This document shows, piece after piece, positions 1,801 to 25,001 of a stretch of DNA of 64,000 nucleotides. How positions within the stretch are numbered: the first letter of the stretch is position 1; every line of letters begins with the position of its first letter. The position numbers and the translations under genes are program-made. The notes under the pieces are model-generated. The model worked only from the letters and a program-made list of their open reading frames with translations, searched no databases and was not told the DNA's origin. The stretch comes from Schizochytrium sp. TIO01 (Eukaryota; Protista; Bigyra: Labyrinthulomycetes). The DNA lies in NCBI GenBank assembly GCA_004764695.1, contig SMSO01000007.1:806001-870000 (forward strand). The letters are read 5' to 3'.

Positions 1801-3812
1801 CCACGACAACACCACGCACGGTTCCGGGTCTGCTGAGCCCTGACTCAGAAGTGAACTGCCCAAGCAACGTTCCGCGACCTTGCGGCACAAAGTTTGTTCA
1901 GAGCTGGGCCTTGAGATACCAAGTGCTCTGCTACTGCGAAATAATTCGCAATCGCGGACTGCTACGACCTGCGCCCGAGATAATATATCATCTGCAGTGC
2001 ACTCGCTGTTATGTATAATAGTCCGTAGATACCAAGCTAAGTGCCTAGGTAGGTGTTATTATTCTTTAGTATCTATTCTATTCGGCAAATGATCTCTCTC
2101 TCTCTCTCTCGCACAAAAACAAATGGTAAGCAGCATCTGAAGTAAGCAGCATCTGCCAGACTGGTATTGACTGAATCTTTCAGCGAGTTCAATTCCGCCA
2201 CGGCAATGCTCCTGGGGCCTGGGAACATGCCTTGATCCGCCTTGAACGCTGGACTGAATGTTTGTTTCTCAAGATCTCAATTCATGATAGCGCACAGAGT
2301 GGATCAAATTGCGCAGATGTTAGCCGACCTTTGTATCCACATAAGCTCCCAATACAGGAACTCCGGGCCGCATGCGCTTGTTCTGTAATACGTGGCCGCC
2401 CCCAGCAGCCCTGCGTCTTCTCATCAGTCCGAACATCTTTTATTAAGCTCGCTCGCAACGATCGCGAGGTCACTCAGAAATGGAAATGCGACTCTGCTGT
2501 AGTTTTTGATTGGTCCACTGCCGTGGATGAATGCTGGATAGGCCGGAGTTCCTGAGTGAGGTGTGCGTGCGTACGTGCTTGTGTACGAGCGTTTTGGAGG
2601 CTGCTTCGGCCATGGACCCTTGAAGCGACCATAAGTTAGTTAGTTGGCTTGGTCGGTTAAGCTCACGAAGCTTGGAACTCAGAACCTCGACGTCGTCGCG
2701 CTGATGTTCAAGGTGGCGGCGAACGGGGACACACGGAAGCGAAGGCCTCGACTTCGCTCGTGGACACGGCAGCGCTCCAAAAGGCTCGTGTCGAGCGAAG
2801 CCCCGGAGTTTTCGCGCCAGCCTCGTCGGCATTTGCAAACGCCATTCATTCACTCACTCGCCTTCGTTATAAGTGCGCTGCACGTGCCGCCAAGCGTCTC
2901 GACATTGGCCAATCTCGGATAGGCCTTTCATCTTCAAAGCTGGGTGCTGCGCCGCTCTCGAGCTTGCTTGCTTGCTTGCTTGCTGGCTTGCTGGCTTGCG
3001 AGCGAGGTGCAGGCAGCTGCCGCGCCCTTCAGCTCGCAGCGCCGCTCCAGCAGCCGGTTGGCTGTCTACATCTTTCGTTCGTCTCCTGCGATACTGCGCG
3101 TAGTACTGTGGAGAACCACAGAAAGAAAGGAAAGAAAGGAAAGAAAGGAAAGGTCAAAAGGAGACCACCGCACAAGGTCTCGCGAGACCACTCTGAGCGC
3201 TCTCAAATCCGCGCTCCCAAATCCGCGCTCCACTCGACAAGACTCCACTCGACAAGACTCCACTCGACTTGAAGGTGGCTTGAAGAGGCGAAGAAGCTGG
3301 CCTCGGCTTGCGAGCGCACGCCCAGGCACGTTTCCCGAGCGCAAGCGTCCTCGACCTCAGGTGGTTGCCTGAGCTTGGGCTCAACGGAGAGCTTGGCTTA
3401 CAGGGCAGCAATCGGCCAACTTGCGAAGAAGCCGCCGCGAGGATGCAATCCCGAGGCCGCCAGGACCTCCGCGAAGACGAAGACGACGACGACGACGACG
3501 CCGTGCTGGTGCTGGTGCTGGTGCTGGTTGCCTGCCGCGAGCACTGCGGCGGCGCGAGGCTTTGCGATGCTTCGAAGCTGATCAAACGGCGGTGCGCATC
3601 CACGAATGAATGCACCATTTGCATGCACCACTTCAAATAAATGCACCGTTTGCATGCGCCATTTCAAGCAAATGCATGCGCCATTTGCGATGCATACGCC
3701 ATTCGCCGCCAAGCCCTCCTGCACTCACGCACTCGGCACTCGCTCCTGCGCTCCGCAGCACCCTAAGAGCTCGACCAAGACCACCTGCGACTCCACCTCC
3801 GTCTCGCGTGGA

Positions 3813-4030
3813 CCAAGCAAGCAACCAAGCAACCAAGCAACCAAGCAACCAAGCAACCAAGCTCTTCGAGGCGGTGTTCGCAGACCCTGAAGGCACTCAC
3901 TCACTCATCCACGCACGCGCTGAGGCGCCTAAACTCCACACATACATACATACACACATACATACATACACACATACATACATACATATAAATACATACA
4001 TATACATACATACATACATACATATACATA
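3813..4030. repeat. Microsatellite cluster: (CCAAGCAA)n and (TACA/CATA)n
   Basis: Direct reading of tandem units at 3813-3862 and about 3937-4030. Confidence 0.9.
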
Positions 4031-4437
4031 TCAGGCCATCGAATCAATCCTAAGCCACTCAGCCAGTCGTCAGTCCATCCGTCAACTGCAGTGTCACGCT
4101 CGGGCCATTCCGCCTCCAAACGAACCGCCTTTCTTGACGACCTCAACCTCAACCTCAACCTCAACCTCAACTCCAACTCCAGTTCAACTCCACTCAAGTT
4201 CGATGGGAATGGCGTTCTTCTGCTCTGTAATTGCCTCTCGAATTCCCTGTAATCCCGCCCTCCAGAGCGCGCCCCGGCCCTACCCTTTCGCCTGACCGCA
4301 CTGCTAGCGCCCAAAGGAAGGAATGAGGCCTCAGTCAGTCAGTCAGTCCGCTCCAAAGAGCGACCGGACAGCGTCTCTTTGTCCCCCTCTCACAGGAAAG
4401 CGGAAGAGGGAAAAAAAGAGAGGAAAAGGAAGAAAGA

Positions 4438-4487
4438 AAGAGAGAAAGAGAAAGAGAAAGAGAAAGAGAAAGAGAAAGAGAAAGAGA
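4438..4487. repeat. (AAGAGA)n microsatellite
   Basis: Tandem hexamer visible in the sequence. Confidence 0.9.
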
Positions 4488-10979: not shown

Positions 10980-12314
10980 ATGTCAGCGGGACCTGGCGGC
11001 GGGCGTGGCCTTGCCCCACGTCGCTTCGACCTAGTAGGCTGCATCTCTGCGTCCAGCTCTCTCCCTCGCCGCGAGGAGGCGCAACATGTGCTGGAGCGCA
11101 TTGCCGCTGCTGTAGAGCCCCTCATGAGGCGCCGGGGATGGTCCGTGCAGCGTCTGGAAGAGATGGTGCCGCGACAACAAGGACTCTTGGGCATGAACGT
11201 GAACCGTGGTGCCAAAATCCTGCTAAAGCTCCGCGATGCTGGAGCTTTCCTGCCTTTCGAGCAGACTCTAGACACCATGCTTCACGAGCTCGTGCATATG
11301 GAGATCGGTCCGCACAATGCTTCGTTTTACCAAATGTGGGATCAACTGCGAGACGAATGTGAACGAGATTTTGCTGCCAGTGGCCGCAAACCAAACCCAT
11401 CAGATCCTTACTCTTCAACAACCTCAGTCATCGCCTTCAGCGGCGAAGGTCGCCGCCTTGGTGGGAATCTCAAGCAGCCAGCCTCAGCGACAGGCCTGCG
11501 GGCTGCAGCGAGAATGGCAGCAGAGAGGAGACTCGGCGTAGGCGGCAGAAGACTAGGCGGAGCCGTGGGCGATGGTAGATCAGACCTAGGGACGGGACTC
11601 ACACCCAAGGAAAGAGCCCGAGCGGCAGCCGAACGACGTAGACAGAAACAGTGCACGTGCATTGCGTTAGAGGATGGCCATGACAGAGATCAGGAGCTCG
11701 ATGGCGATATAGATCTAAGTGTAACGGAGGAAGGCGAAAGAAGTAAGGCTGGCCAGGTGCTGGCGGGCTCTTCATCAACGGATGTTCCTGAGAATGGAGT
11801 GAAGGAGGCGCGCATTAACGCGGGGGAGAAGCAAACTCAGGAGAAGAAGAGACCGAGGGAGTCGTTGAATACTGGGTTAGAGAACAGTCTTAATGCTGAG
11901 GTCGTTGAAATTGATGTCTCGTGCAAACAAGGATCTGGGAAGGGTCTGCGCCCTGTTTCTTCTTCATCCTTTCTTTCAAAGTCAAATAACAATATTGAAA
12001 TTAGTGCCCACAACGGGATCAAGACAGTGCAGCAAGACAATGCAAAGCGCCGCAGAAGCAATCCAACTGTTCGGCGTAATCATGCCAAAGATGTTTTGAA
12101 CAGAGCTTGGGGTTGCCCTACTTGTACGTATATTAATGCTGAAACTCCACATCGAAGTTGTACCGCGTGTGGAGGGCAGCGACCTTCAGAGTCATATCTC
12201 TGGACATGTATATTTTGTGGACTAGAAAACTCCATAGACGCGGCCAAGTGCCTACGTTGCTCTAGCAAAAAACCTCGTCGTGTGAAACCATCTGGTTTTG
12301 TTGATCTAACATAA
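10980..12314 (+). CDS. WSS1: Wss1-like WLM metalloprotease (DNA-protein crosslink repair) with RanBP2-type zinc fingers
   Basis: WLM core LLGMNVNRG...TMLHELVH...HNASFY. SHP box FSGEGRRLGG; VIM-like RAAARMAAERR; WxCxxCT.xN..CxxC fingers x2; C-terminal SIM FVDLT. ATG at 10980 preferred over the upstream TTG. Confidence 0.92.
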   Translation: MSAGPGGGRGLAPRRFDLVGCISASSSLPRREEAQHVLERIAAAVEPLMRRRGWSVQRLEEMVPRQQGLLGMNVNRGAKILLKLRDAGAFLPFEQTLDTMLHELVHMEIGPHNASFYQMWDQLRDECERDFAASGRKPNPSDPYSSTTSVIAFSGEGRRLGGNLKQPASATGLRAAARMAAERRLGVGGRRLGGAVGDGRSDLGTGLTPKERARAAAERRRQKQCTCIALEDGHDRDQELDGDIDLSVTEEGERSKAGQVLAGSSSTDVPENGVKEARINAGEKQTQEKKRPRESLNTGLENSLNAEVVEIDVSCKQGSGKGLRPVSSSSFLSKSNNNIEISAHNGIKTVQQDNAKRRRSNPTVRRNHAKDVLNRAWGCPTCTYINAETPHRSCTACGGQRPSESYLWTCIFCGLENSIDAAKCLRCSSKKPRRVKPSGFVDLT

Positions 12315-12553
12315 CCAGCTTCTCAAGCTTGTATGTGTCATATTAAATCATGTGTATCTTGTATTTCTTTTGTTGGACAATATTGTTTTTTAGCAAAGAG
12401 TCATTCGGACAAGGCATAATAAAAGTTAACGAGGACTTATGGAAACTCAAGGGTACTTGCTCACTAGGCACCAGGTTCAATAATACAAACGATTTTAGTT
12501 AAACATTTAATAAACAGGATGTGGATTTTTGGTTCATAGTAAGTAGGTCATAA

Positions 12554-13075
12554 TGAGATGTGGTTATGATTACTTAGAGGTATTTGGGGAAATGTCTGAG
12601 GTGATAGTAGTCAGTTAGTATTATGACTAGGATTGTCTTGTTGAATGTGCTTGATAGATTCAAGTGCTTTTAGTCGCTTTGGTATTTCGGGTCTGCTTGT
12701 CAGGTTTGTCGAGCGCACCCACTTCTTAGTGTTGCGTATTCCACTCCCCTTGCTTCCTCTCCTTTAAGGCCCATGAATCCTATTCAATAATGAGAGCGCC
12801 AATGGCGACTACTCTGCAATAAACATAATTTCTGCAGAGTAGCTTGTGCTGTGAAGCGTGCAGAGATAGTCTGACAAAGATGGCAAGCTCAAGAGAAGGA
12901 GAAAAAGGATTATATATGAGTTGTTGGGATTTGTTTCGGGTCTGGATGCACGCAGAGATGAATGTATCATGCTAGTCCAAAACATTGTGTCGAATATGAG
13001 AGTTATGTTCTCTGACAGGGGGGTTTGGTTAGGTTAGGGTTAGTGTGAGCTTGGTTAGGTTAGGTTAGGTTAGGC
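12554..13075 (-). mobile_element. Inverted, 5'-truncated copy of the copia LTR
   Basis: 12554-12709 is the reverse complement of 13428-13581, and about 12850-13075 of about 13155-13335, with substitutions and indels. Confidence 0.88.
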
Positions 13076-13125
13076 GTGAATCAAGTAGGTACACCTTTTC
13101 ACCTTGCAAAGTCCTGTCGTAAAGA

Positions 13126-13581
13126 TGTATTGAAGTAATATACAGCCAGCTACTGCCTAACCTCACCTAACCTAACCAAGCTGTCCTGCCCGACACAGCC
13201 TGTGTATTGGACTGACATCATACATTCATCCCTGCCTGTTATCTCGACGCGAAACCCCAATAACTCATATATCATCCTCTTTCTCTTTCTCCTGAGTTCG
13301 CCATCCTTGTCAGACCACCTTTGCACACTTCAGTAAGCCCTTCTCAGTAATAACTCGATGGGAACAAAGCAAGAGCCTTACCCAGGGAACGAAGGGAACA
13401 AAGCAAGCATCGAGAGGAGTTTGCAAAGCAAACCTGACAAGCAGACCCGAAATACCAAAGCGACCAGAAGCACTTAAATCTATCAAGCGCATTCAACAAG
13501 ACAACCCTAGCTACAATACTAACTAACTACTATCACCTAAGACATTTCCCCAAATACCTAAGTAATCATAACCACGTCTCA
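13126..13581 (+). mobile_element. 5' LTR of Ty1/copia element (~456 bp, TG...CA)
   Basis: Starts TGTATTG and ends GTCTCA, followed by the PBS-like GGTTATGG (13585-13592) and the gag ATG. Homologous copies at 12554-13075 and 45888-46110 support the boundaries. Confidence 0.8.
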
Positions 13582-13595
13582 CTAGGTTATGGAAA

Positions 13596-14510
13596 ATGTC
13601 TCAACAAGAAGAAAGCGCAACCTCCCCGTCTCATACAGGCGTGATGGCCGGTGCCAACCGAGAAAATACGAGGATAGTGAGTGATGCCATCTTTGATCAC
13701 TCAAGGCAGAATTTACCCAGAATAAAGGTTGGTGGAGCGGATACCTGGAGAATAGCTCGTAGGCAATTACTTGCGCAGATGGATAAAAGGAAACTAAAGC
13801 CAGAAACAATACGAGCATGCACAGATCCAGCCACTAAACGTGATATGGATGCAAAGCTATTTGCCTTTATAGTAACTGAAGCAAACTTACAATCAGACTT
13901 GTTTCTTATCATAAACAAGGACAACGCAGCTATGTCAGGCCTCAAGGCATGGGATAACCTCGAATCGCATTTCATATCGAAAAACAATAGAGAAGCCGTA
14001 GCTTTGATAAATGAATTTTCATCCTTAATCTCAAGAAGAGAAATCCTCGCGAGACAACGACAAGGTAAACCAGCTTTCAAGCTTCTTTATCGTCAGGCAG
14101 AAGCAGTCGTGGAAGAACTACTCACATATGTGGACCCAAACAATGCGGCAAAAGAAATAGCCTCATTAATGATACTCGCAACACTTGATAACATAGAGTC
14201 ATACTCATCCAGTTATGAACTCAAGACAATCCTCGCGGGTAAGAGAAAGAACCTACATTTAGATGCAGAGGAACTTAGTAATGTAACACCTGACGTAAAA
14301 GATCATCCGTCGTTGCAAATAGTCCGAGAACCAGTTCAACAATCGACTATGATGACACAAGGTCCACCCAATCAACAAAATAACAGCCAGTACAATCGCA
14401 AACGCTCGTACCGGAGCACCATTGTATGCAAAAGGTGTGGCAAAAAGGGACACTATGGTAACGAATGCAGAACCAATCCAGACCCACAATCGCGCCAACA
14501 GTATCGATAA
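13596..14510 (+). CDS. Copia Gag-like protein with CCHC zinc knuckle
   Basis: SGLKAWDNLESHF (copia gag A.xW..L motif) and CKRCGKKGHYGNEC. Confidence 0.85.
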   Translation: MSQQEESATSPSHTGVMAGANRENTRIVSDAIFDHSRQNLPRIKVGGADTWRIARRQLLAQMDKRKLKPETIRACTDPATKRDMDAKLFAFIVTEANLQSDLFLIINKDNAAMSGLKAWDNLESHFISKNNREAVALINEFSSLISRREILARQRQGKPAFKLLYRQAEAVVEELLTYVDPNNAAKEIASLMILATLDNIESYSSSYELKTILAGKRKNLHLDAEELSNVTPDVKDHPSLQIVREPVQQSTMMTQGPPNQQNNSQYNRKRSYRSTIVCKRCGKKGHYGNECRTNPDPQSRQQYR

Positions 14511-14694
14511 CGCCCACACAAGGCTCAACGACCTTCGCTTCCAGCAAACAATCGAGATGCAGATTCAGCTGTAAGTAGCCATGTAAAACATTCATATTCC
14601 TACAAACTCAACTGACTCGACTACGAACAGCAACAGCTTTGATACTTATGTCGATGGTTACGGATTCGACGTGGGACCCCCATTACCCTCCAAC

Positions 14695-16330
14695 ATGGCT
14701 ATCCTAGATACGGGATGCACAAGAACCATTACTGTCAATCGCGTTGTATTCCAAGAATGATGACATCATTATGAATCGCGTACTCAACTGTTTTCTAGAT
14801 CCAATGAACTCTGAAATGCTAACCTCACCTGCATTCCCGCATACTTCACATGATACATCCGATACCAGGGTTGATGTATCGAACTCTACTAAGCTTACTC
14901 CTTCATTTGAAACACTCTTGGGGACTAACAGCCCTCCTATGAACACACCCTAAAATAGTGCTGTGATAGCTTCGCCGCATGAACACACTGCAATGGCTTT
15001 ACCGCCTGACAAAGATAGATAGAATGACCTCACCGTCTCCATTTAGTATTTTATCACCCACTCTAAATGAACCAATTCTGAGTTCCCCTCTTTTATCCAG
15101 ACGTGCAACGAGTGCGGTCTTGTTAATGAATGAAAAACCTGACTTCGCTAACCACGGATCAGATGATTATGAGAACCCTGACTTCGCTAACCCCGAATCA
15201 GACGACATGAGAAACGTGGCTTCGCTAACCACGAATTAGATGATTATGAATCAAATAGAAGTACACATGATCAAAATGCACTACCCCGAATATCTTCCCA
15301 TGATGCAGGAGATGATGATGATAACGATAATGATTATAAACCCTCACAGGAATCTACCATAACAACAGAAATCAGACGTAACAGTCGTACACGAATTCGA
15401 GTTACACGTATTAACATTGTCTCTGCAACTGCATTTGATGCAGCAAATAGACATACATACAGTGCACTGACTATACCAGTAGCCCGAATGGGGGAGCAGT
15501 CCCAACCAGACCTTTCAGGAATGGGGGAGCATGTTTCCATGACACATACTCAACACGGGACCAAGCGTCCACGATCTGACGGAACCTTTCATGCTTCACG
15601 TCAGGGGGGGGTCTAACAAATTCTGTAAAGCAGAAAACCAATAACATCAATGTCATGTTAACAACACAAAAGCCCGTCATACGACTGACTTCAAATATCA
15701 CTGTTCCAAAGACATAAAAAGAATTCACAAAGATGCAGCCCGAAGACCAGGAACCTTAGATAGAAGCTATTCAGAAAGAACTGTCAAACCTTGAACGACG
15801 CGGCACTTTCCTACTGGTCCCAAGATCGACTGCAACCACAGGTACCATGGGAGCCAGATGGGTATTCACTTACAATGAAATCGAAGACATCGCAAAAGCA
15901 CGGCTAGTTGTGCAAGGCTTTGACGAACCACTCCAATCGAAAGTGGGTGTCTATGCACCAACATCAGACGCTTAACACTTCGAACTGCTATTGTAGTTGC
16001 TCTAACTCGAAATTGGGAAATAGCAGTACTAGATGTATTCGCAGCTTTTTTTATCAAGCAGAAATCGACCACGAAGACAAGAATATCTTTGTGGAACCAC
16101 CTGAAGATGTAACAGTCCCGAATGGACACGTTTATAAATTAGCTCGCTCACTTTATGGCCTTCGTACAAGTCCGAAGCGTTGGTCCCAACATTTGTCAAA
16201 GACACTCTTTGACAGTGGACGCAGGAAAAGCAAATTTAATCCCAGTTGCTACATGAATAACAACTCCATTATCATTACTCATGTCGATGACCTTTCCATA
16301 TTTGGAACAACAAATGCGGTACAAGACCAT
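14695..16330 (+). pseudogene. Copia pol pseudogene (aspartic protease + reverse transcriptase fragments)
   Basis: AILDTGCTRT at 14698-14727. PKT*KEF...P*IEAIQKELSNLERRGTF...RWVF...KARLVVQGF, SLYGLRTSPKRW and HVDDL (about 16280), with stops and frameshifts. Confidence 0.9.
15138..15250 (+). repeat. Three ~39-bp imperfect tandem repeats inside the copia pol linker
   Basis: CTTCGCTAACCACG/CCG.ATCAGA.GA..ATGAGAA recurs three times. Confidence 0.8.
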
Positions 16331-17269
16331 CCGAAGCAGGAACAACACAAGGACTCCAGATCGATTCTGAGAAATTACTTTGCTTAGGACAGACTAAGAC
16401 CTTGTGAGTGTTTCTTGTGTTTTTCAAAGAATACTCCACAAAAATGTTGATGTTGCAGGATCTTTACAAGACGTTTGGCGAGTTCTTCCTTGCCATAAAA
16501 TTTTGCTAATGCAGCCCTTGCCTTTATCTATTTCCGTAGAAGAGTAGCTCTGCATTGTCTAAATCTTTGTAAAAGAACAACTATCGTCCTTTCAATATTT
16601 CTGAGAGATTCATTTTACTCCCAACGCTTTTCTCGGCCTCGCTTTGCCTTTGCTGAAGCTTGTAATAAATGTCCCTTATTTGTTTATCCTAGCGTGAGAA
16701 GACTTTGAATGCACCGGGTGATTATTAGCTTTTTAATCATTTTAAAAAATTGCGATCTCCAAGGATCTCTTCAAATGTAGACAACGTCTCAGGGTAAAAT
16801 ATTCCCATTGTACCAGTGTTGCAAATGATTATTTCAGGTTGTAGGGCGTCAATGTGCCCTCATCTTTCCTAGATGACTTTGCACACACATACCCATGGGT
16901 AGTTATGTTCTGATGACTCAGAGAAGTGCTGGAAAAGTATATAATTTAGTCACAAAACATAGAGCGAAGAGTATGCATTCAACGCACCTGACTTGTCAGA
17001 ATAACTCTTTTATTTGAAAAAAATCGCGTTGTGCATGCTAGAGAAGTGCCAAAGAGTTTTCAATCCTATTATATCGCTGAGATACCGATGCTGAGTAGTT
17101 GAAGGTTTCGAGAAACGTCTAGAGACTCTACTTGAGAGGAAGCTCAATTTGCGGACGCACTTTTCACTTCACTGTTAGAACTTTGCTCTAAATTTTCACA
17201 CAACGCAGGTGGGACAGGAGAGGGGGCGACCGATGTTTTCGTTATTTGACTACTTGCCTTCAAATTGCA

Positions 17270-19156
17270 TTAGCTCCTTAACGATTCAAGCGTCTGACCG
17301 CCTTTTACGTCACGATTCTTGTCGTACGATCGATCACCATCCTGAATAGAATGATGTTTCAAAAGTGCATACCGGTTTATTGGACTCACTCCCGTCTTTC
17401 GAAGGCCAAGTAAACAGTTTTTCTCTGTGAATGTTTCTATGAGAGCCTGCCCAGCCAAGCCGATGATTTTTGGGACATTCAGGGGATGCTCCTTATTTTC
17501 GCCAGAAGTTTCCCAGCTATCCCTTAATCTTGCAATCCTTTGCTTTAAATCTCCAAAAGGATGCACATCTGGACCCTGGGATATTGAAGTTGTATTGGGA
17601 AGCCGGCCAGCAAGAACAACGCCCTCTTTTTGAAGTCTTTTAATCAAATTGATACTAAGGCGAGAGTAATGCCAGCCTGTTAGCCATAAAACTCGCTTCC
17701 CAGGTTCTGGAGCTATGTCTGGAAACATTTTCTTAATACAACCTTCCAAAATAAGCTCTTCAATATTCTCTGAGGTTATTTCCCCTTTTTTATTAACTCC
17801 AATAGTAACATTTTTAACCTCCTGTCCATTCACAGGTGGTAATGCTGGAAACTTTGGAGCCAGCTCGTTTATCTCAGATCTTGTAGCGTCGTTGATGTTT
17901 TGGTCAGATTGCACCACCCAGACAGGCACTGTAGGTTTACCTGATACGGTGTGCCCACCAAACAAGGTAATGTGCTTTGAGCATGTTGTGTTTGCTGCTC
18001 CTGTACAATCCTTTATAGAGTTTTCATCTGATATGTCCGATTTCGACATTTGAGTAACGGAGAGTTTCCTTTTTTTAAATGATGTTTTCATTTTGCCTCC
18101 ATTCACGCAAATTTCATCAGTAATAATGACACGTTCTGGATGTAGCCATATCAGTTCACCATTTCTATCTTCAGATTCTAGAGGTTTTCGAGCAAATTCG
18201 TAATCTAAGAGAAGAGATTTGAAGCGATCAAACCACCAATTGATACGATTTGTGTTGGACCATCGCGAAGTTCGAGTTTCAGGGTCGCGTCCAAGTGCCT
18301 CAGTAAGGTTTGGTTTGACTTTTTTCATACGGCTAAACCATAGACGATACCACCCCATTGATGGGCGCTTAATGTTCAAAGATGGTTTCCCTTCTTCGGT
18401 GAGCATGTCTCCTGCTAAATTTAAAACATCCTCGCGTGAGATAGGAAACCCGAGGTGATCGAGATACAAAACAGTTTCCAAAAGGTTCTCTTCAGCACAT
18501 GTATCTAAAGCGACTGGGCGCCCTAATACCCTGGACGCGTCACGAGTACCAGAATGCCACCGTCGTAATGTCGAATCGTGAATTTCAATATGTAGATACT
18601 TTTTGAAAAACTTGCAAGCATCAACAGAATCCTTAAAATGGTGTGAACTCTTGCTCTCTAGATCAGTGATTTTTTCGCTGAGATTTTCAATCATGGTAGA
18701 CTTTCTCAAGATGCGCAGCTCCAGTGATGCAGCTATGATTTTGTCCGTGTCTTTTGGTAAATCAGACTGAGCCATCTGCTGATTATGAGTTCGTAACTTA
18801 GCCTCCAGCTCCTGCAGTTCATGCATCAATTCTGTCCTCAACTTTTCATCGCTGGCCTTTTGTGTCTCGTGCTCGCTTCGTAGGCCATACCATGTCTTCA
18901 GCAAGGTCTTCACAGCTGGAGGCAGACCCTTTCTCCCTGTGGACGCACTCATCTCCATGTCTACATACCTTTTCACAGCGTCGCAGAGGGAAACGCGACG
19001 CACAAGGCTTGCATTTGGGCCATCACCTGCAAGTTTAACTATCCCGTCAGGTAACAACTCAACTATTCGAAATGAAACATTGTCCTCCTTAAAGCAAACC
19101 TTATTGCCTATCAGCTCAACCGCCTCTTGCAGTTGTGCCTGCTCCCAAGCGTCCAT
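17270..19156 (-). mobile_element. pogo/Fot1-type (Tc1/mariner superfamily) transposase, probably inactive
   Basis: HTH (STLRRW), CENP-B-like HTH (EENLLETVLYLDHLGFPISRED...PSMGWYRLWFSR), first D in ITDE, LWLTGWHYSR at the second-D position, and PNTTSISQGPDVHPFGDLK with 35 residues between positions 2 and 3 (DD35D spacing). ATG at 19156. Confidence 0.88.
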
Positions 19157-19259
19157 TGGCACCGCGCAAAGACGCAACCTCGCACGTTTTGCAACTGTAT
19201 CTATGAAAACGTTAGAACTAATATAGGAAGTGCCATTTCATTTACATTAGTATATGTCC

Positions 19260-20026
19260 AGGTCTTTGTTAGGGAGTGGAGGTTAGGTAAGAAAATGGAA
19301 TGGCCAAGGAACCGCCAACCTCGAGTGAAGCAAACCTTCAATTCGAAATATCAAAGTATTTTAAACAGAAGTTTGGTGTCTCGGCAAGTGCTCTTCGGGT
19401 TCTTCCCCGGAGGAAATCGCATACACGCAAGTGAAGACGTTGAGGGCGGTTTGTTCCAGCGGCCGCGAGCAACGCAGCACAGGCTGTACCATGATATACG
19501 CCAGAGTATCCTCCGCCAAGCAAAAAGAGAATTTCAAATGCCGAATTGGTGATCTCTAGCATACCCATCCAGACGTCTCCGCTGTTTACAAAGACATTGG
19601 CAGAGGGGTCAACTTCGAAAGGCCGTGCTTGCGACTACCGGGAGTCACCGCAAGCTTGCTGTGAAAACTACGGTGCTATCCTTTTGCCTAAAGTTGAAAC
19701 CTCAACAAGTTAGCAAGATTCATCAAACCCAAGACAGCTCGAATGGTGTGTTGTTTGTTGGCTTCTGACAAGTGCTCATTCACAAACCCGAGCTTTTCCC
19801 CTGCGACTGGTGTAAATTAGTCATTTGCTGAGAGACTTGCACTTCAAAACCACGCAATGAATGTGGTATCATCCACAACAACTTCGAAACATCCAAGATT
19901 TGGCATCATTTGCGGTACCTAGCCAAGTACACAATTTAAGGATTGTCTTTGAGTCGCGGGTTAGCTTTTAACCCGCGATTGGTCACTTTGTCCCCGGAAA
20001 TGCAAATTTTGCAATTTTTATAGGTC
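19260..20026 (+). mobile_element. Non-autonomous IS607/Fanzor2-derived mini-element, copy 1 (TnpA + Fanzor2 remnants + putative omega-RNA end)
   Basis: Cross-frame translation: KFGVSASALR (MerR-like HTH), PGGNRI, MIYARVSSAKQKE...VYKDIGRGVNFERPCL (IS607 serine recombinase). Then HRKLA/CENYGAILLPKVE, KTARM, QVLIHKPELFP..WCKLVIC*ETCTSKPRNECGIIHNN and LRYL (Fanzor2/TnpB C-terminal half), followed by a 3' hairpin. Confidence 0.88.
19930..20024 (+). ncRNA. Putative omega-RNA scaffold / right end of Fanzor2 element (copy 1)
   Basis: Lies directly after the Fanzor C-terminal remnant. Stems ACAAT/ATTGT, TCGCGGGTTA/TAACCCGCGA and TGCAAA/TTTGCA; 53 nt identical with copy 2. Transcription is not demonstrated. 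Confidence 0.55.
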
Positions 20027-20655
20027 AAATGCTAAGTGGAATCACTCGGTATATCTAAACTATATTAATTTTAATTATAATAGTTTGGTGGGCAGAACCC
20101 ACGATCTGAAGTGCGCGTTTTTATTTTCAATTCTCAGTATACGTTTCTGTTACGTCCATGGTAAATGGAGAATTAAAAACTAAACAAGAGATAAACAGTC
20201 GCATTCGTTGCACGATAGTGCTAAACCGTGCATTGGGTTGAGAATAGCCAAGTACCTCGGTACCTCTTGTTCTTCGTTTTCTGCAAGTTGTGACAGAATT
20301 GTTAATACTTGACTGTTCGGTTTAGTACTTCTCCTATCATTATTAGAGAATTAGGTACGGATTCGACGACTGAAAGCAAAGTACGTGTATCTGGTATGTA
20401 GTAATTTAATATTTAAAAAAAACGGAGGCAATTAATTTGACGTGAAGACATTACATTGGGAAAATGGGTTGATAACGATAGAGAAACCCTGACGCCCCTT
20501 CAATCTTATGTATTGAGAAGATAATTTGTTTCTACTCTGCCATATTCTTACTTTCTTAATTGGGATCTTCAGCAGCAATGTGGAGTTCCTCGAAAAAGTG
20601 AACTGGTTTATAGCTTCGAGAAAGGGTCTTCAAAATAGGATATCTTGTTGAGCTC

Positions 20656-21990
20656 TCAAGTATTTTTCTTTCCAGGGATGATAAATCGCGTAGGTAGACC
20701 AGAGTCAGGGCGTGCAACGGGCAACCAGCGGTAATTATGAATCTGATCCAAGGTTTCCCAGGTTTCAAAGTTTCTGATGAGTTCGCAGCAAATTGTTTCA
20801 ACAACAAACCGAGCAAAGGATTGACCTATGCAACAGTGTTCGCCAAGTCCATAGCTAAAGTGAAGTGGTATTGGGTCGTGTGTAGTAGTGCTCCAACGCC
20901 CTGGATCAAATTTCATGGGATCAGGAAATACCTTAGAGTCACGATTGGCAGTGAGAAAACTGCACCAAAGTTTGCTACCTGCTGGTACCGAATATCCACA
21001 GAGTGACATATCTTTAGTTGCTGTGCGACAGCAACCAATTACTGGTGGGTATAACCTTTCAACCTCATAAATTGTGTGGAGGAGAAGATCATTCTGGGAC
21101 TTCTCTGTTAAGCATACCTGACGCAACTGTGAATGTAGAATCTCATCCTGAGAGACAAGCATCACAAACGAAGCTACGATACTTCCAACAGCCTTACTTA
21201 CCATGGAACTTGTAAACATTATGTAGTGGTCAACTCTTTCCTCGCGACTAGCTAGGTTTCTCTGAAATGGACATGAAGCAGGCAAATCAGCATGCTTATC
21301 GTCTGTTGCTGCGAATTTTGCTGCGAGATGCTGCCGTGCTTCTTTCGCTTCATTAAAAGCGCTGCGTTTGCGGAATCCAAGTAGGCTAACATCCACGTTG
21401 GCGCCCGATGATACGGTTCCACGCCACATTGTTTGGTGAAGTTTCTTGAAATCATGCTCTTTCTCATCAGAACCATGATGGCAGGCGAGAAAAGACGCAT
21501 GCAGCACCTCTGCACAGAGCTCCTTTGCATAGTCATAGACCCCAATTTCAATAGTTCCGGCAGCATTAGCTTTGGCATTTGCAAGAAGTCCTTTGGCTCG
21601 TGTATGAATAGTCTCTCGAACTTTCTCTGCTAGGCCGCTGGACTCAAGTTTCTCCTTATTTGCAAAACTGCTTTCGCGCAAAGCCTTCCGCGTGGCTGTG
21701 TGATCCTCCCCATCTTGGAAAAGAACTGTGTCTCCGAAGAGACTGAGCCCCGTAAAGCTTGCGTATCCATGCTTGCTGGATAGCCCACTCGCGTCAAAGT
21801 CTTCAGTCAGCGCTGTTTCAACAGCCTTGTAGGATGCTGCAAATATCACAGGCCATTGTAGAATTCTCGAGCCAAACACTTCGCCCCGTTCTTCTAGCCT
21901 CGAACTCAAGAAGTTCTCAGCGTTGCGGCCAAACGCGGTAGTTTCGCTGGGGCTCTTGAGAAGACTCGGGACATGCACTTTTTGCGCCAT
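20656..21990 (-). CDS. Cytochrome P450 (divergent, CYP26/CYP120-like, no obvious N-terminal anchor)
   Basis: ExxR (EVER), PERF-like FDPGRW and heme motif FSYGLGEHCCIG. ATG at 21990. The family assignment is tentative. Confidence 0.9.
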   Translation of the reverse strand: MAQKVHVPSLLKSPSETTAFGRNAENFLSSRLEERGEVFGSRILQWPVIFAASYKAVETALTEDFDASGLSSKHGYASFTGLSLFGDTVLFQDGEDHTATRKALRESSFANKEKLESSGLAEKVRETIHTRAKGLLANAKANAAGTIEIGVYDYAKELCAEVLHASFLACHHGSDEKEHDFKKLHQTMWRGTVSSGANVDVSLLGFRKRSAFNEAKEARQHLAAKFAATDDKHADLPASCPFQRNLASREERVDHYIMFTSSMVSKAVGSIVASFVMLVSQDEILHSQLRQVCLTEKSQNDLLLHTIYEVERLYPPVIGCCRTATKDMSLCGYSVPAGSKLWCSFLTANRDSKVFPDPMKFDPGRWSTTTHDPIPLHFSYGLGEHCCIGQSFARFVVETICCELIRNFETWETLDQIHNYRWLPVARPDSGLPTRFIIPGKKNT

Positions 21991-22199
21991 ACCTGATCTT
22001 GCCAAGGACCTCTGCAGGTCTTCACAAGCTTAACTTGTATTCTGCCGCGCCCTTGACTGATTCTTTGGTCGTTTGGCTCGGTAGCTCACGGTGCAGGTTT
22101 CAATTGTGTTTTTGGAGTTTGGATCAATTAATTCCAAGTACCTATGCAAAGGTGAGAACTTACATAACCTCCAAATAAGAGAGACTATTCCCTTTGATT

Positions 22200-22965
22200 A
22201 GGTCTTTGTTAAGAAATGGAGCCTAGGTTAGAAAATGGAATGGCCAAGGAACCATCAAAAGCTCCAAACACTACAAGTGAAGCAAACCTGCAATACAAGC
22301 TAGCAAAGTACTTCCACGAGAAGTTTAGCGTCTCGGCAAGTGCCCTTCGGGTGCTTCCCCGAAGGCAATCGCATATACGCAAGTTACGACGTTGAGGGCA
22401 TCCATCATCTATGGCTAGGTAGCCGCGCCCTCAGTACTGGCCGAACTATTATCTACGCCAGAGTGTCCTCCGCCAAGCAAAAAGAGGACTTCAAATGCGA
22501 GACTAGCAATGGCATCGATAGAGGGGTCAACTTCAAAAGGCCGTGCTTGCGCGCCCCACGGGACTACCGAGATTCACCGCAAGCTTGCACTTTGGCTCTG
22601 TGAAAACTACGATGTTATCCTTTTGCCTAAATTTGAACGCTCAACAAGTTAGCAAGGTGGACCAAAACTGAGACAGCTCGAGTGATGTGTCGTTTGTTGG
22701 CTTCTGACAAGTGCTCATTCACAAACCCGAGGTTCCCCCGTGTGACTGGTGTAAACTAGTCATTTGCTGAGAGACTTGCACTTCAAAACCACGCAATGAA
22801 TGTGCTATCATCCACGACAAGGTCGAAACATCCAAGGTTTGGCATCCTTTTGCGCTACCTACCCAAGTGCACAATTTAAGGATTGTCTTTGAGTCGCGGG
22901 TTAGCTTTTAACCCGCGATTGGGCCTTAGCCCCACTTTGTCACCATAGGAAATGCAAATTTTATA
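22200..22965 (+). mobile_element. Non-autonomous IS607/Fanzor2-derived mini-element, copy 2
   Basis: Direct repeat of 19260-20026 starting at the same AGGTCTTTGTTA. RTIIYARVSSAKQKEDF, RGVNFKRPCL, HRKLALWLCENYDVILLPKFE, WCKLVIC*ETCTSK..NEC, ILLRYL, and the same 3' hairpin. Confidence 0.88.
22870..22965 (+). ncRNA. Putative omega-RNA scaffold / right end (copy 2)
   Basis: Same hairpins as copy 1, plus GGGCCTTAGCCC, which is largely deleted in copy 1. Confidence 0.5.
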
Positions 22966-23849
22966 TTTTAATCACTAAACGTGAGCGGCGCTCAATTACG
23001 GATAGACCGGGTTAGTGGATGTCGTACTTTGCGTACACTTGAAAGTTGGTCTGACCATCGTTAAGGGCCATGATCTGCGGTGGTAGGTATTCTATTGAAC
23101 AATTGGAGATTCTTTGCCAACTTCCTGTGATGAACTTGCATGTACCTTAGGTATATATATACAAATAAGCTAGTTACAACCAAGACATTGGACTAGTCTG
23201 AACTATCATGATCCATTGCACAAGAGAACATGGTGCCTGTTCCAAATTCTCAGACAAGTCCAAATGCCATGGCAATGCACGTTTTAGAAAGATCTAGCCT
23301 GAGACGGTTCAGGCTAGATCATAAATCTTAACAAAGATCAAATTTACATCAAGGTTGATAAGAATAGATAGAGGAAGAAAGAGTGGGGGGGTTTTAAATA
23401 GTTTTGATTTTAGTATGATAGAAGATTATGATTTTCACAAAAGTCATGTACAGCAGTGTCTGGTATTGTTTTTCATTTTTGATGTGTTGATATGTGTTTC
23501 GATTTTTCAATTTTTTTTGTATTTTTCATCATTCAAGTTGTAGTAGCAGGAGAGTTCTGTGTTTTCTGATTGATGTGGTGATTGCTTTTTTGTTTGTCTG
23601 CGTGTGCTCATGCGCGCCTCTTCAGAGAGAGGTTGTGTGTATGCATGTGTTCAGGCTTGCGAAGAAAAATCATCGCAAGGAAGGCGTGCACTGCATCACG
23701 AGACAGGGGATTAAAACAGCCTATGTGCATAGTTTTTGTGTGTATGTACGAGTAAAAACATGGGCGTTGGTGCTAGTGATGTTGCTGTTGAACAAAAGCA
23801 GATCCACAGGATCTGCACGAATGTTGAGCTGGAACATGGAGTGATAAGA

Positions 23850-25001
23850 TTACTTGCAGAGCTCAGCATCCACGAGGTCGTTGAAGGCAGTGAAGAATTC
23901 ATCCTGACCACGAGCAAGAGCAGCAGTGCGAAGGTTCTCCAAAACTGACGGCTCCGAGCGGTCACCGGGGCGAACCACCATGGAACCAATCTCGTAGAGA
24001 GTCTTTCCCTTGGCGGCAGCCTTCTTGAGGAGAACAGTGGACATCCAGACGCTAATCTGAGCATCCTCGTCAACGCCAGCCTCATTAAGGAGGTTAACAT
24101 CCGCGACTACATCGATGTCTTTGATCGCCTGGAGCATCTCCTCACTGAAAGGCTGCTTAGCCTGAGGGTAGAAGAAGATTTCGCTGGAGACATCAGCAAG
24201 CTCTTCGCCATTTACCGAGGGAAAGGCCAATGCGTGGTCAATCGGGACGAGCTTCTTACCGCTCATCATGAGGTTGCCGGCGTGGCGATCACGGTTTAGG
24301 ATACGGATGTCCAACACTCCAATGCGGTGTACATCCTCCTTGGCGAAAGCGTTGGCACCGTAGTCAGTTGCGTCCTCGCCCTCGATGTACTCCTGAGCGG
24401 ATCCCAGGGTCTCGGACTCATTATCCTCGCCACCGAGGTTGACATTGCCCATGACTGTGTTAGGGACTCCCGCAAGACCACGGTCGAGGAGAAAAGCAGC
24501 CTGCTCGTTGATAGCACCGCGAAGAGAAACCTCATCGTTTGCAGGCTTGAAAACGACCTTGCGCTGGCCCTCAGAATCCTTCAAAAAGAAGACATCCGTG
24601 GTGCCATTCTCTGCACGCTCCACAGAAGAGATATCAAGGGTGCTGAGAAGCGTGCGCATCTTATCTTGCAGGATGTGCAAGGACTCATCAATCTCGGAGA
24701 GATCATCGGCAACATCCTCTTCATCAGTAAGCTCTGCATGGCTTTCGAGATCGAGCTGGTGCTCAACGGAGTGGTGAATAGCCTCAGGCCTGTGGAAGTC
24801 CATGTGCAGCTCAGCGAGCTCTTGTTTGAATGCGTTGGGGTTAAGGAGCACGGCAAATGCCGCAGCAGCATAGATGTTTGAGTCGCGCTGGAAAGCAGAG
24901 AGATCGATCTCAGGCTGATCAAACATCGCAATGGGCAATGCGTTGGGTACAGGGCGAGTCAGGGCGGTGGCAGCCGCTGGGTTCTGAGAGAGGAGAAGCA
25001 T
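23850..25001 (-). CDS. Type II phosphatidylinositol 4-kinase gamma-like kinase
   Basis: VVFKP, EQAAFLLD, GSAQEY, VHRIGVLDIRILNRDRHAGNLM, LVPIDHALAFP, PQAKQPFS. First ATG at 25001. Confidence 0.92.
   Translation of the reverse strand: MLLLSQNPAAATALTRPVPNALPIAMFDQPEIDLSAFQRDSNIYAAAAFAVLLNPNAFKQELAELHMDFHRPEAIHHSVEHQLDLESHAELTDEEDVADDLSEIDESLHILQDKMRTLLSTLDISSVERAENGTTDVFFLKDSEGQRKVVFKPANDEVSLRGAINEQAAFLLDRGLAGVPNTVMGNVNLGGEDNESETLGSAQEYIEGEDATDYGANAFAKEDVHRIGVLDIRILNRDRHAGNLMMSGKKLVPIDHALAFPSVNGEELADVSSEIFFYPQAKQPFSEEMLQAIKDIDVVADVNLLNEAGVDEDAQISVWMSTVLLKKAAAKGKTLYEIGSMVVRPGDRSEPSVLENLRTAALARGQDEFFTAFNDLVDAELCK

Follow-up and report, generated by a model that had tools for sequence, protein, structure and literature searches.

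Fanzor2 nucleases have been known from IS607-type elements since the work of Bao & Jurka (2013, PMC3627910), and a DPG motif combined with a C-terminally shifted RuvC-II glutamate defines the Fanzors and pro-Fanzor TnpBs (bioRxiv 10.1101/2023.08.09.552727). Described eukaryotic and viral members include ACa-1 and ACa-2 of Acanthamoeba castellanii, ISvMimi_1/2 and ISvNY2A_1 (PMC3627910), and the L79 protein (PDB 9b0l). Here, we examine a 64,000-nucleotide stretch of the thraustochytrid Schizochytrium sp. TIO01 (GenBank contig SMSO01000007.1, positions 806,001 to 870,000), hereafter the window, which corresponds to C6:806001-870000 of the 64-Mb, 37-contig eukaryotic assembly that was searched as a whole. 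Within the window lie two direct repeats, termed A and B, that we interpret with a probability of roughly 0.87 as fossils of an old non-autonomous family, derived from a 2-kb IS607-Fanzor2 transposon through a founder deletion, spread by TnpA acting in trans, and followed by local re-copying.

The parent of this family, represented in the same genome by full-length copies described below, resembles the eukaryotic and viral elements in several respects: a serine-recombinase TnpA precedes Fanzor2, terminal inverted repeats and target duplications are absent, and the DPG motif, shifted RuvC-II glutamate, zinc ribbon and conserved 3' non-coding block are all present. Unlike those elements, however, copies of the A/B type are only ~0.85 kb long, lack coding capacity and have multiplied to dozens; moreover, their host belongs to the thraustochytrids and is not an amoeba, alga or virus, and in this lineage the N-terminal extension of Fanzor is encoded over tnpA in a different frame. 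The accounts of IS607-Fanzor2 elements consulted here (e.g. PMC3627910, PMC10530073) do not describe a miniature, non-coding and multiplied family. A second comparison is with the palindrome-associated transposable elements (PATEs) of the bacterial IS200/IS605 group (Meers et al., PMC10055086), which the miniature elements ("minis") resemble in being short, retaining both ends, lacking a protein gene and relying on a foreign transposase. PATEs often keep an omega-RNA region (PMC10055086), the mini counterpart of which is only a candidate. PATEs also have bare ends and depend on a Y1 HUH transposase and single-stranded hairpin ends, whereas in the minis ~0.8 kb of decayed coding sequence survives and their parent uses an IS607-type serine recombinase in a eukaryotic nucleus. 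Bacterial IS607 and ISXfa1 match the present elements in gene order, in the order of TnpA domains (helix-turn-helix (HTH), then catalytic) and in the position of the right-end guide-RNA region; in contrast to theirs, the nuclease here possesses a basic stretch resembling a nuclear localization signal and a long N-terminal extension. Elements of this type are known, and the mini family represents expected behaviour of DNA transposons, paralleling both bacterial PATEs and miniature inverted-repeat transposable elements (MITEs).

Repeats A and B and their dispersed miniature family

A repeat search of the window found six collinear direct-repeat blocks of 84-96% identity between 19260-19982 and 22200-22922, and no inverted repeats in the A/B region. 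In pairwise alignment the two copies form a single continuous homology, broken by private indels of 39, 12, 11, 10 and 9 bp, with ~80-83% identity over ~800 aligned bases (80.5% over 800 columns in a refined global alignment). To set the element termini, 30 copies from the genome were stacked together with four full-length elements, with conserved terminal motifs as anchors. The left terminus of the family is a GTAYCTATG...AACGTTAGAAC motif, starting at GTAYCTATGAAAACGTTAGAAC, and the right terminus reads ...AAATGCAA.TTTTGCAA...CTAAGTG, also given as ...AAATGCAAGTTTTGCAAATTTTATAGGTTAA..CTAAGTG; outside both, the flanks of the stacked copies are unrelated. The GTATCTATGAAAACGTTAGAAC terminus of A is common to the family and resembles the left end of the full-length elements.

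Comparison with proteins encoded elsewhere in the genome identifies both repeats as remnants of the two transposon genes. In blastx comparisons with full-length open reading frames (ORFs) of the same genome, with E values scaled to the 64-Mb search space, A and B matched TnpA at 2e-22 and 2e-15 and Fanzor at 1e-9 and 5e-18, respectively. The tnpA remnant of A is 69% identical at residues 71-129 and 59% identical at residues 10-38. Stop-free pieces of both repeats also match NCBIfam transpos_IS607 at 8e-6, and an external Fanzor2 profile, built solely from relatives in other organisms, matches one piece of B at 1.2e-8 in an alignment that takes in the RuvC-II helix as well as the N-terminal extension. 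Of the nuclease, the minis retain only the LLPK(F/V)E and E..TSK..C part, RuvC-I being deleted throughout and RuvC-III additionally in A and B. A single frame of B (22419-22649) runs from the Fanzor N-terminal extension directly into EIHRKLALWLCENYDVILLPKFE; an in-frame reading across the deletion junction has a chance expectation of one in three, and the 30-copy majority sequence is noisy as to coding by the founder. Whatever the founder encoded, A and B are inert today and are long-dead fossil copies.

The two repeats belong to a much larger family. A genome search with repeat A yielded 63 matches and 204 first-look candidates, 40 of which were scored; the same internal junction is crossed without a break in at least 39 copies, on 14 contigs, aligned at 67-78% identity. 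These elements measure ~0.85-0.98 kb, and their junction joins positions equivalent to ~2775 and ~3962 of L071, a locus with a full-length element. The corresponding ~1.1-kb internal deletion removes the TnpA C-terminus together with residues ~121-519 of the Fanzor long ORF, RuvC-I included. Each mini is thus built of the left end and first ~125 tnpA codons, followed by the last ~125 Fanzor2 codons, a 3' hairpin block and the right end. At the DNA level, A and B match L071 at 2335-2748 and 3967-4252, and B additionally at 4312-4380. A target duplication, scored as a 2-5-bp flank repeat, was present in none of nine well-bounded minis (0/9). The maximum-likelihood tree is star-like, with 22 of 28 inner branches unresolved and a median terminal branch of 0.15, and identity among segments is roughly uniform across the family (0.65-0.80), which suggests neutral decay. 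The copies are dispersed, share a common deletion, keep both ends and lack an intact ORF, and an autonomous relative is present in the genome; judged by these sequence features, the family is an old burst of one non-autonomous, MITE/PATE-like element. The family majority sequence reads FQxPxKCxHVADRDIHAARGILLRYLSKDMI, and the founder therefore had the second CxxC and RuvC-III, even though A and B have lost them.

The earlier note on this DNA, made from its letters without database searches, had flagged A and B as two direct repeats. The repeats are real, as are the private indels and the absence of shared flanks that it described, but both had been drawn too short at either end relative to the stacked termini (Table 1). 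All of the peptides it quoted are present, distributed among three frames and interrupted by stops, and the blastx, NCBIfam and external-profile matches endorse their attribution to TnpA and Fanzor. The retained part of the nuclease, however, is the last fifth of the protein and not its C-terminal half. Of the two large deletions that the note assigned to both copies, the ~1.1-kb one is indeed shared but is a property of the whole family, whereas the second measures only ~60 bp and occurs in A and B alone. Finally, its proposal that a deletion derivative was amplified in trans gains from the family-wide junction, since A and B are clearly not the only two copies.

Table 1. Positions in the window of the two miniature elements, their component parts and the intervening host gene
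Feature	Position	Length	Strand	Description
Miniature element A	19197..20038	842 bp	+	Non-coding, internally deleted IS607-Fanzor2 derivative; assigned from stacked termini, blastx and tree
Left end of A	19197..19294		+	Non-coding, up to former tnpA start codon ATG 19295-19297
tnpA remnant of A	19295..19635		+	~Residues 1-129 with HTH and catalytic-Ser motif IYARVSSAKQKE; frameshifted, with stops
Fanzor2 C-terminal remnant of A	19636..19939		+	From junction 19635/19636 to former stop TAA 19937-19939; keeps the HRKLA..LLPK(V/F)E stretch, shifted Glu and first CxxC
3' non-coding block and right end of A	19940..20038		+	7-12-bp hairpin 19953-19978 and TGCAA-NNN-TTGCA hairpin 20001-20013; candidate omega-RNA scaffold tail; terminal CTAAGTG
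Miniature element B	22138..22983	846 bp	+	Sister of A; right end degraded
tnpA remnant of B	22235..22564		+	Private 39-bp deletion relative to A
Fanzor2 C-terminal remnant of B	22565..22879		+	From junction 22564/22565 to former stop TAA 22877-22879
Host cytochrome P450 gene between the minis	20656..22005		-	Pfam p450 1.2e-27; context, not cargo

Full-length and parent-type elements in the same genome

A Pfam-profile search of the whole genome detected many TnpB zinc-ribbon (TNB) matches within open frames of at least 660 aa, with Resolvase matches ~1.1-1.5 kb away on the same strand. At L071, a 2.2-kb element occupies ~2257-4459, and other copies are 95-99% identical to it. Its tnpA is a 232-aa ORF that scores 144.9 bits against NCBIfam transpos_IS607 (cut-off 110 bits), matches Pfam Resolvase at 5e-20 and shows a weak N-terminal MerR HTH. 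The Fanzor frame, 646 codons from the first GTG, matches Pfam TNB (1.5e-13) and HTH_OrfB (1.4e-9) and scores 94.5 bits against NCBIfam guided_TnpB, slightly below the 100-bit cut-off; its best PDB match is the mimivirus TnpB-like L79 Fanzor2 (9b0l, 3.7e-19), with Cas12/TnpB entries at 4e-7 or worse. When aligned with nine relatives, this protein displays an invariant D444-P445-G446 at RuvC-I, P540 at the position of the canonical RuvC-II Glu (LLPKFE), an invariant E592 before YTSKTC, a CxxC...CxxC zinc ribbon, and DRD (D627/D629) at RuvC-III. The rearranged RuvC domain that the earlier note had read from the fragments is accordingly found in the full-length protein.

In the full-length elements, moreover, ~220 codons of the long Fanzor frame coincide with tnpA, read in a different frame (L071:2410-3068; columns 1-230 of the A3 alignment). 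The overlapping segment encodes an N-terminal extension with the pattern C.P(F/Y)W...LWSCT.T...SW(F/Y)T...ITENEQRK, of which ~190 residues are conserved at ~45% in relatives from other sources; this conservation points to a genuinely overprinted domain.

Two lineages of related elements can be distinguished. The older includes the parent-type copy L050 (C13:1239228-1242377), which is decayed. It matches the mini majority sequence at 84-85% identity to the left and to the right of the junction, and retains the ~1.09 kb absent from the minis. A second old copy (C7, ~183.6-185.4 kb in search coordinates) matches mini A exactly to the junction, beyond which Fanzor sequence follows. The young family, 76-78% identical to the mini majority sequence, contains 15 copies with an uninterrupted 601-aa Fanzor frame, ~10 of which also have an open tnpA, and P0001, a transcript-derived ORF in MMETSP, is 99% identical to one full-length genomic copy. 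At least seven young full-length copies have a TAA within the resolvase domain of tnpA, while the overlapping Fanzor frame is open in most; these include C36:1883576-1885378, C5:1372873-1374675 and C31:5077323-5079125, and it is to one such copy that P0001 is 99% identical. Both lineages occur side by side on C4, where a mini-type right end at ~725.9-726.1 kb (L049:340-539, minus strand) lies ~1 kb from the young full-length copy C4:727076-728892.

An autonomous IS607-Fanzor2 element, current or past, had been predicted for this protist or its viruses. The protist half of that prediction is realized in the decayed parent and the young intact copies, and the source of the minis is accordingly the genome of the protist. 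On the viral side, a single-protein scan of viral contigs for a giant-virus origin found nothing, and an alignment-based scan of viral contigs returned only two distant relatives at 33-45% amino acid identity. One of the two, a Fanzor2 relative at L080:3752-5376 on a 480-kb IMG/VR contig of giant-virus size, has a best segment of 45% identity, is split by a frameshift into ORFs of 264 and 277 aa, and has no upstream tnpA.

The insertion sites of the two lineages show recurrent flanking bases. The three bases preceding the terminal GT are ACT in five of nine well-bounded minis (L001, L007, L011, L017 and L024), and several young copies (L065, L067, L069 and L070) have ACAGT or ACAGA before the left end; either a true element terminus or a target motif akin to a target-adjacent motif (TAM) could account for such ACT/ACA bases. 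Bacterial IS607 and ISXfa1 insert beside GGG, which is also the TAM, in contrast to the ACT|GT of the minis and the ACAGT of several young copies, where no GGG is seen.

Origin of the A/B pair and its genomic setting

The ~60-bp deletion that removes the second CxxC and RuvC-III lies at ~19901/19902 in A. A 126-nt probe across it (19850-19975) aligned from end to end with A and B only; all of the other matches (38/38) cover just one side of query position 52/53. Because this deletion is limited to A and B, the two are sister copies, and their relationship is also apparent in a Kimura two-parameter distance of 0.19 (family median 0.32) and in an A+B clade with 99/99 support in the maximum-likelihood tree. 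Each has acquired ~0.10 substitutions per site and its private indels since the pair arose, and homology between them stops at the family termini. Most likely, a doubly deleted, non-coding copy was re-copied ~2.9 kb away in trans. The only other supported clade in the tree is a trio of minis (L018, L019 and L024; 100/100) within 18 kb at C24:867859-885948, in which one copy is on the opposite strand to the other two and homology is again confined to the element. Together, the pair and the trio are consistent with, and hint at, a tendency to short-range re-insertion. Segmental duplication was considered for both and rejected, as flanks are not shared in either.

The history that we favour for A and B combines these observations with established IS607 biology. 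IS607 TnpA excises its element as a circle and integrates it without a target duplication. One founder lost ~1.1 kb, keeping both ends, the ~0.45 kb next to the left end, and the last ~0.49 kb with the 3' hairpin block. Since this founder encoded no working protein, it presumably spread only via the TnpA of full-length elements acting on its ends. The family expanded in a single burst, with each copy now ~0.15 substitutions per site from the node. One copy later lost a further ~60 bp and was copied ~2.9 kb away, across the intervening host P450 gene, giving rise to the A/B pair by a presumed transposition step.

Several points weigh against this history. First, the lineage to which the intact TnpA belongs shows just 76-78% identity with the mini majority sequence and has divergent termini, which makes present-day mobilization of the minis doubtful. 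Second, no relevant Pfam match was obtained for eight peptides without stops from A and B, a result we ascribe to the shortness of the pieces. Third, A and B are more alike in their 3' halves (85%) than in their 5' halves (76%; p = 0.002), and stretches of 53, 48 and 40 nt match perfectly; this demands an extra explanation such as gene conversion or past constraint. As the final 46 nt are the least similar part of the pair (54%), gene conversion between neighbouring repeats is favoured over selection. Finally, local copying by a route other than transposase might have produced the pair. In this scenario A and B arose by local duplication or recombination, for example through replication slippage, unequal exchange or repair synthesis, with TnpA in trans uninvolved, and the pair would say nothing about mobilization of the doubly deleted copy. 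The direct orientation of A and B, their separation by just 2.9 kb, and the signs of sequence exchange in their 3' halves are what such a process would leave. Yet the homology is bounded by the family termini and the flanks are unshared, so that an exact match to the transposon ends would have to be a coincidence, and the independent C24 trio of close relatives repeats the pattern with one member inverted. We therefore regard local duplication as an unlikely origin for the pair, and transposition in trans as the better account.

The gene between the two minis raises a different question, namely, whether A, P450 and B form a composite transposon that brought the cytochrome P450 gene to this site. 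The arrangement itself, a gene bracketed by two direct copies of the same element within a lower-GC, transposon-rich island, invites such a reading. However, the P450 stretch is single-copy in the genome, and its protein has a 50% orthologue in the thraustochytrid Hondaea fermentalgiana as well as a 100% identical counterpart in JGI and MMETSP, known as an ORF from a transcript; this is what a resident host gene would show. Both A and B also have complete inner ends, and each is therefore an ordinary, separate insertion. The composite transposon is accordingly very improbable and was rejected on the single-copy state of the stretch and the thraustochytrid orthologue.

Other features of the surroundings may be recorded here. 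Positions 12000-24000 of the window, which contain both minis, form a transposon-rich island with a GC content of 0.41-0.45, compared with ~0.50-0.55 nearby. This island includes a Copia-type reverse-transcriptase fragment at 15908-16387 (plus strand; RVT_2, 1.3e-11) and, at 17270-19177 on the minus strand, an intact 635-aa ORF without a Pfam match, the start of which is 20 bp away from the left end of mini A. The ORF is the sole open member of its family, other genomic copies being stop-riddled and 33-58% identical at the amino acid level, and it may represent a transposon gene that was domesticated or is the last to survive. A ~170-bp dispersed repeat of an unclassified short family lies directly downstream of mini A, at 20076-20249, and recurs at 74-78% identity at six or more other contig positions.

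The 3' block, a candidate omega-RNA and implications

Downstream of the Fanzor stop codon, both lineages contain a 7-12-bp hairpin, a short GC hairpin and a TGCAA-NNN-TTGCA hairpin (the first and last located for A in Table 1). These three structures are common to minis and full-length copies and sit upstream of the terminal CTAAG(T/A)G. In the young family, variants of the first hairpin (G-U to G-C, U-G to U-A) preserve pairing. Covariation of the 3' structure in an 18-sequence alignment was not clearly above shuffled controls (15/500 for score and 39/500 for percent paired), and an Rfam search with L071 and L001 gave no match at E <= 1. Precedents for an RNA at this position exist both in bacterial PATEs with omega-RNAs (PMC10055086) and in ApmFz2, whose 3' non-coding RNA is conserved (PMC10530073). 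By position and precedent, an omega-RNA function of the mini 3' block is possible, and the block is a candidate for such a role; a putative omega-RNA of the founder, processed from a read-through transcript, could also have been used by Fanzor2 in trans.

A stronger version of this idea holds that the minis were, or are, guide-RNA modules, the eukaryotic counterparts of PATEs, in which a putative omega-RNA gene was kept for use by Fanzor2 in trans for homing and retention while TnpA supplied movement; the 3' block would then be under selection. The founder deletion did spare the entire 3' ~490 bp, with the three hairpins that minis share with full-length elements, as well as the region next to the left end where a read-through transcript might start. 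The 53-nt perfect run between A and B covers the main hairpin, and the bacterial PATEs that encode omega-RNAs (PMC10055086) provide a model. Several results count against this version: conservation of the 3' block and termini among the minis (0.65-0.70) does not surpass that of the rest of the element (0.74-0.80), the covariation counts given above do not exceed those of shuffles, A and B agree least in the 46 nt that precede the guide position, and the third hairpin is destroyed in B. We consider it improbable that the minis served as guide-RNA modules, and retain the reading of A and B as decayed, non-autonomous derivatives moved by TnpA. A related suggestion, speculative and rather doubtful, is that the minis were double hitch-hikers, dependent on TnpA in trans for moves that tended to end within a few kb of the donor and on Fanzor2 in trans, through the putative omega-RNA, for restoration after excision. 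If so, they would be the first eukaryotic IS607-type counterpart of the omega-RNA-bearing bacterial PATEs.

The success of a short, non-coding family implies that TnpA acted in trans in the nucleus, and its mobilization implies that the element ends plus ~0.4-0.5 kb on each side sufficed. The A/B pair, although dead, is for these reasons of modest value as evidence for trans-mobilization and local re-insertion of such elements in a eukaryote. The same genome also offers a usable native system: some 15 open Fanzor2 frames, ~10 of them beside an open tnpA, together with a transcript-derived ORF 99% identical to a genomic copy, in a culturable thraustochytrid host. Such a system is well suited to the question of what role Fanzor2 plays for its transposon in a eukaryote.

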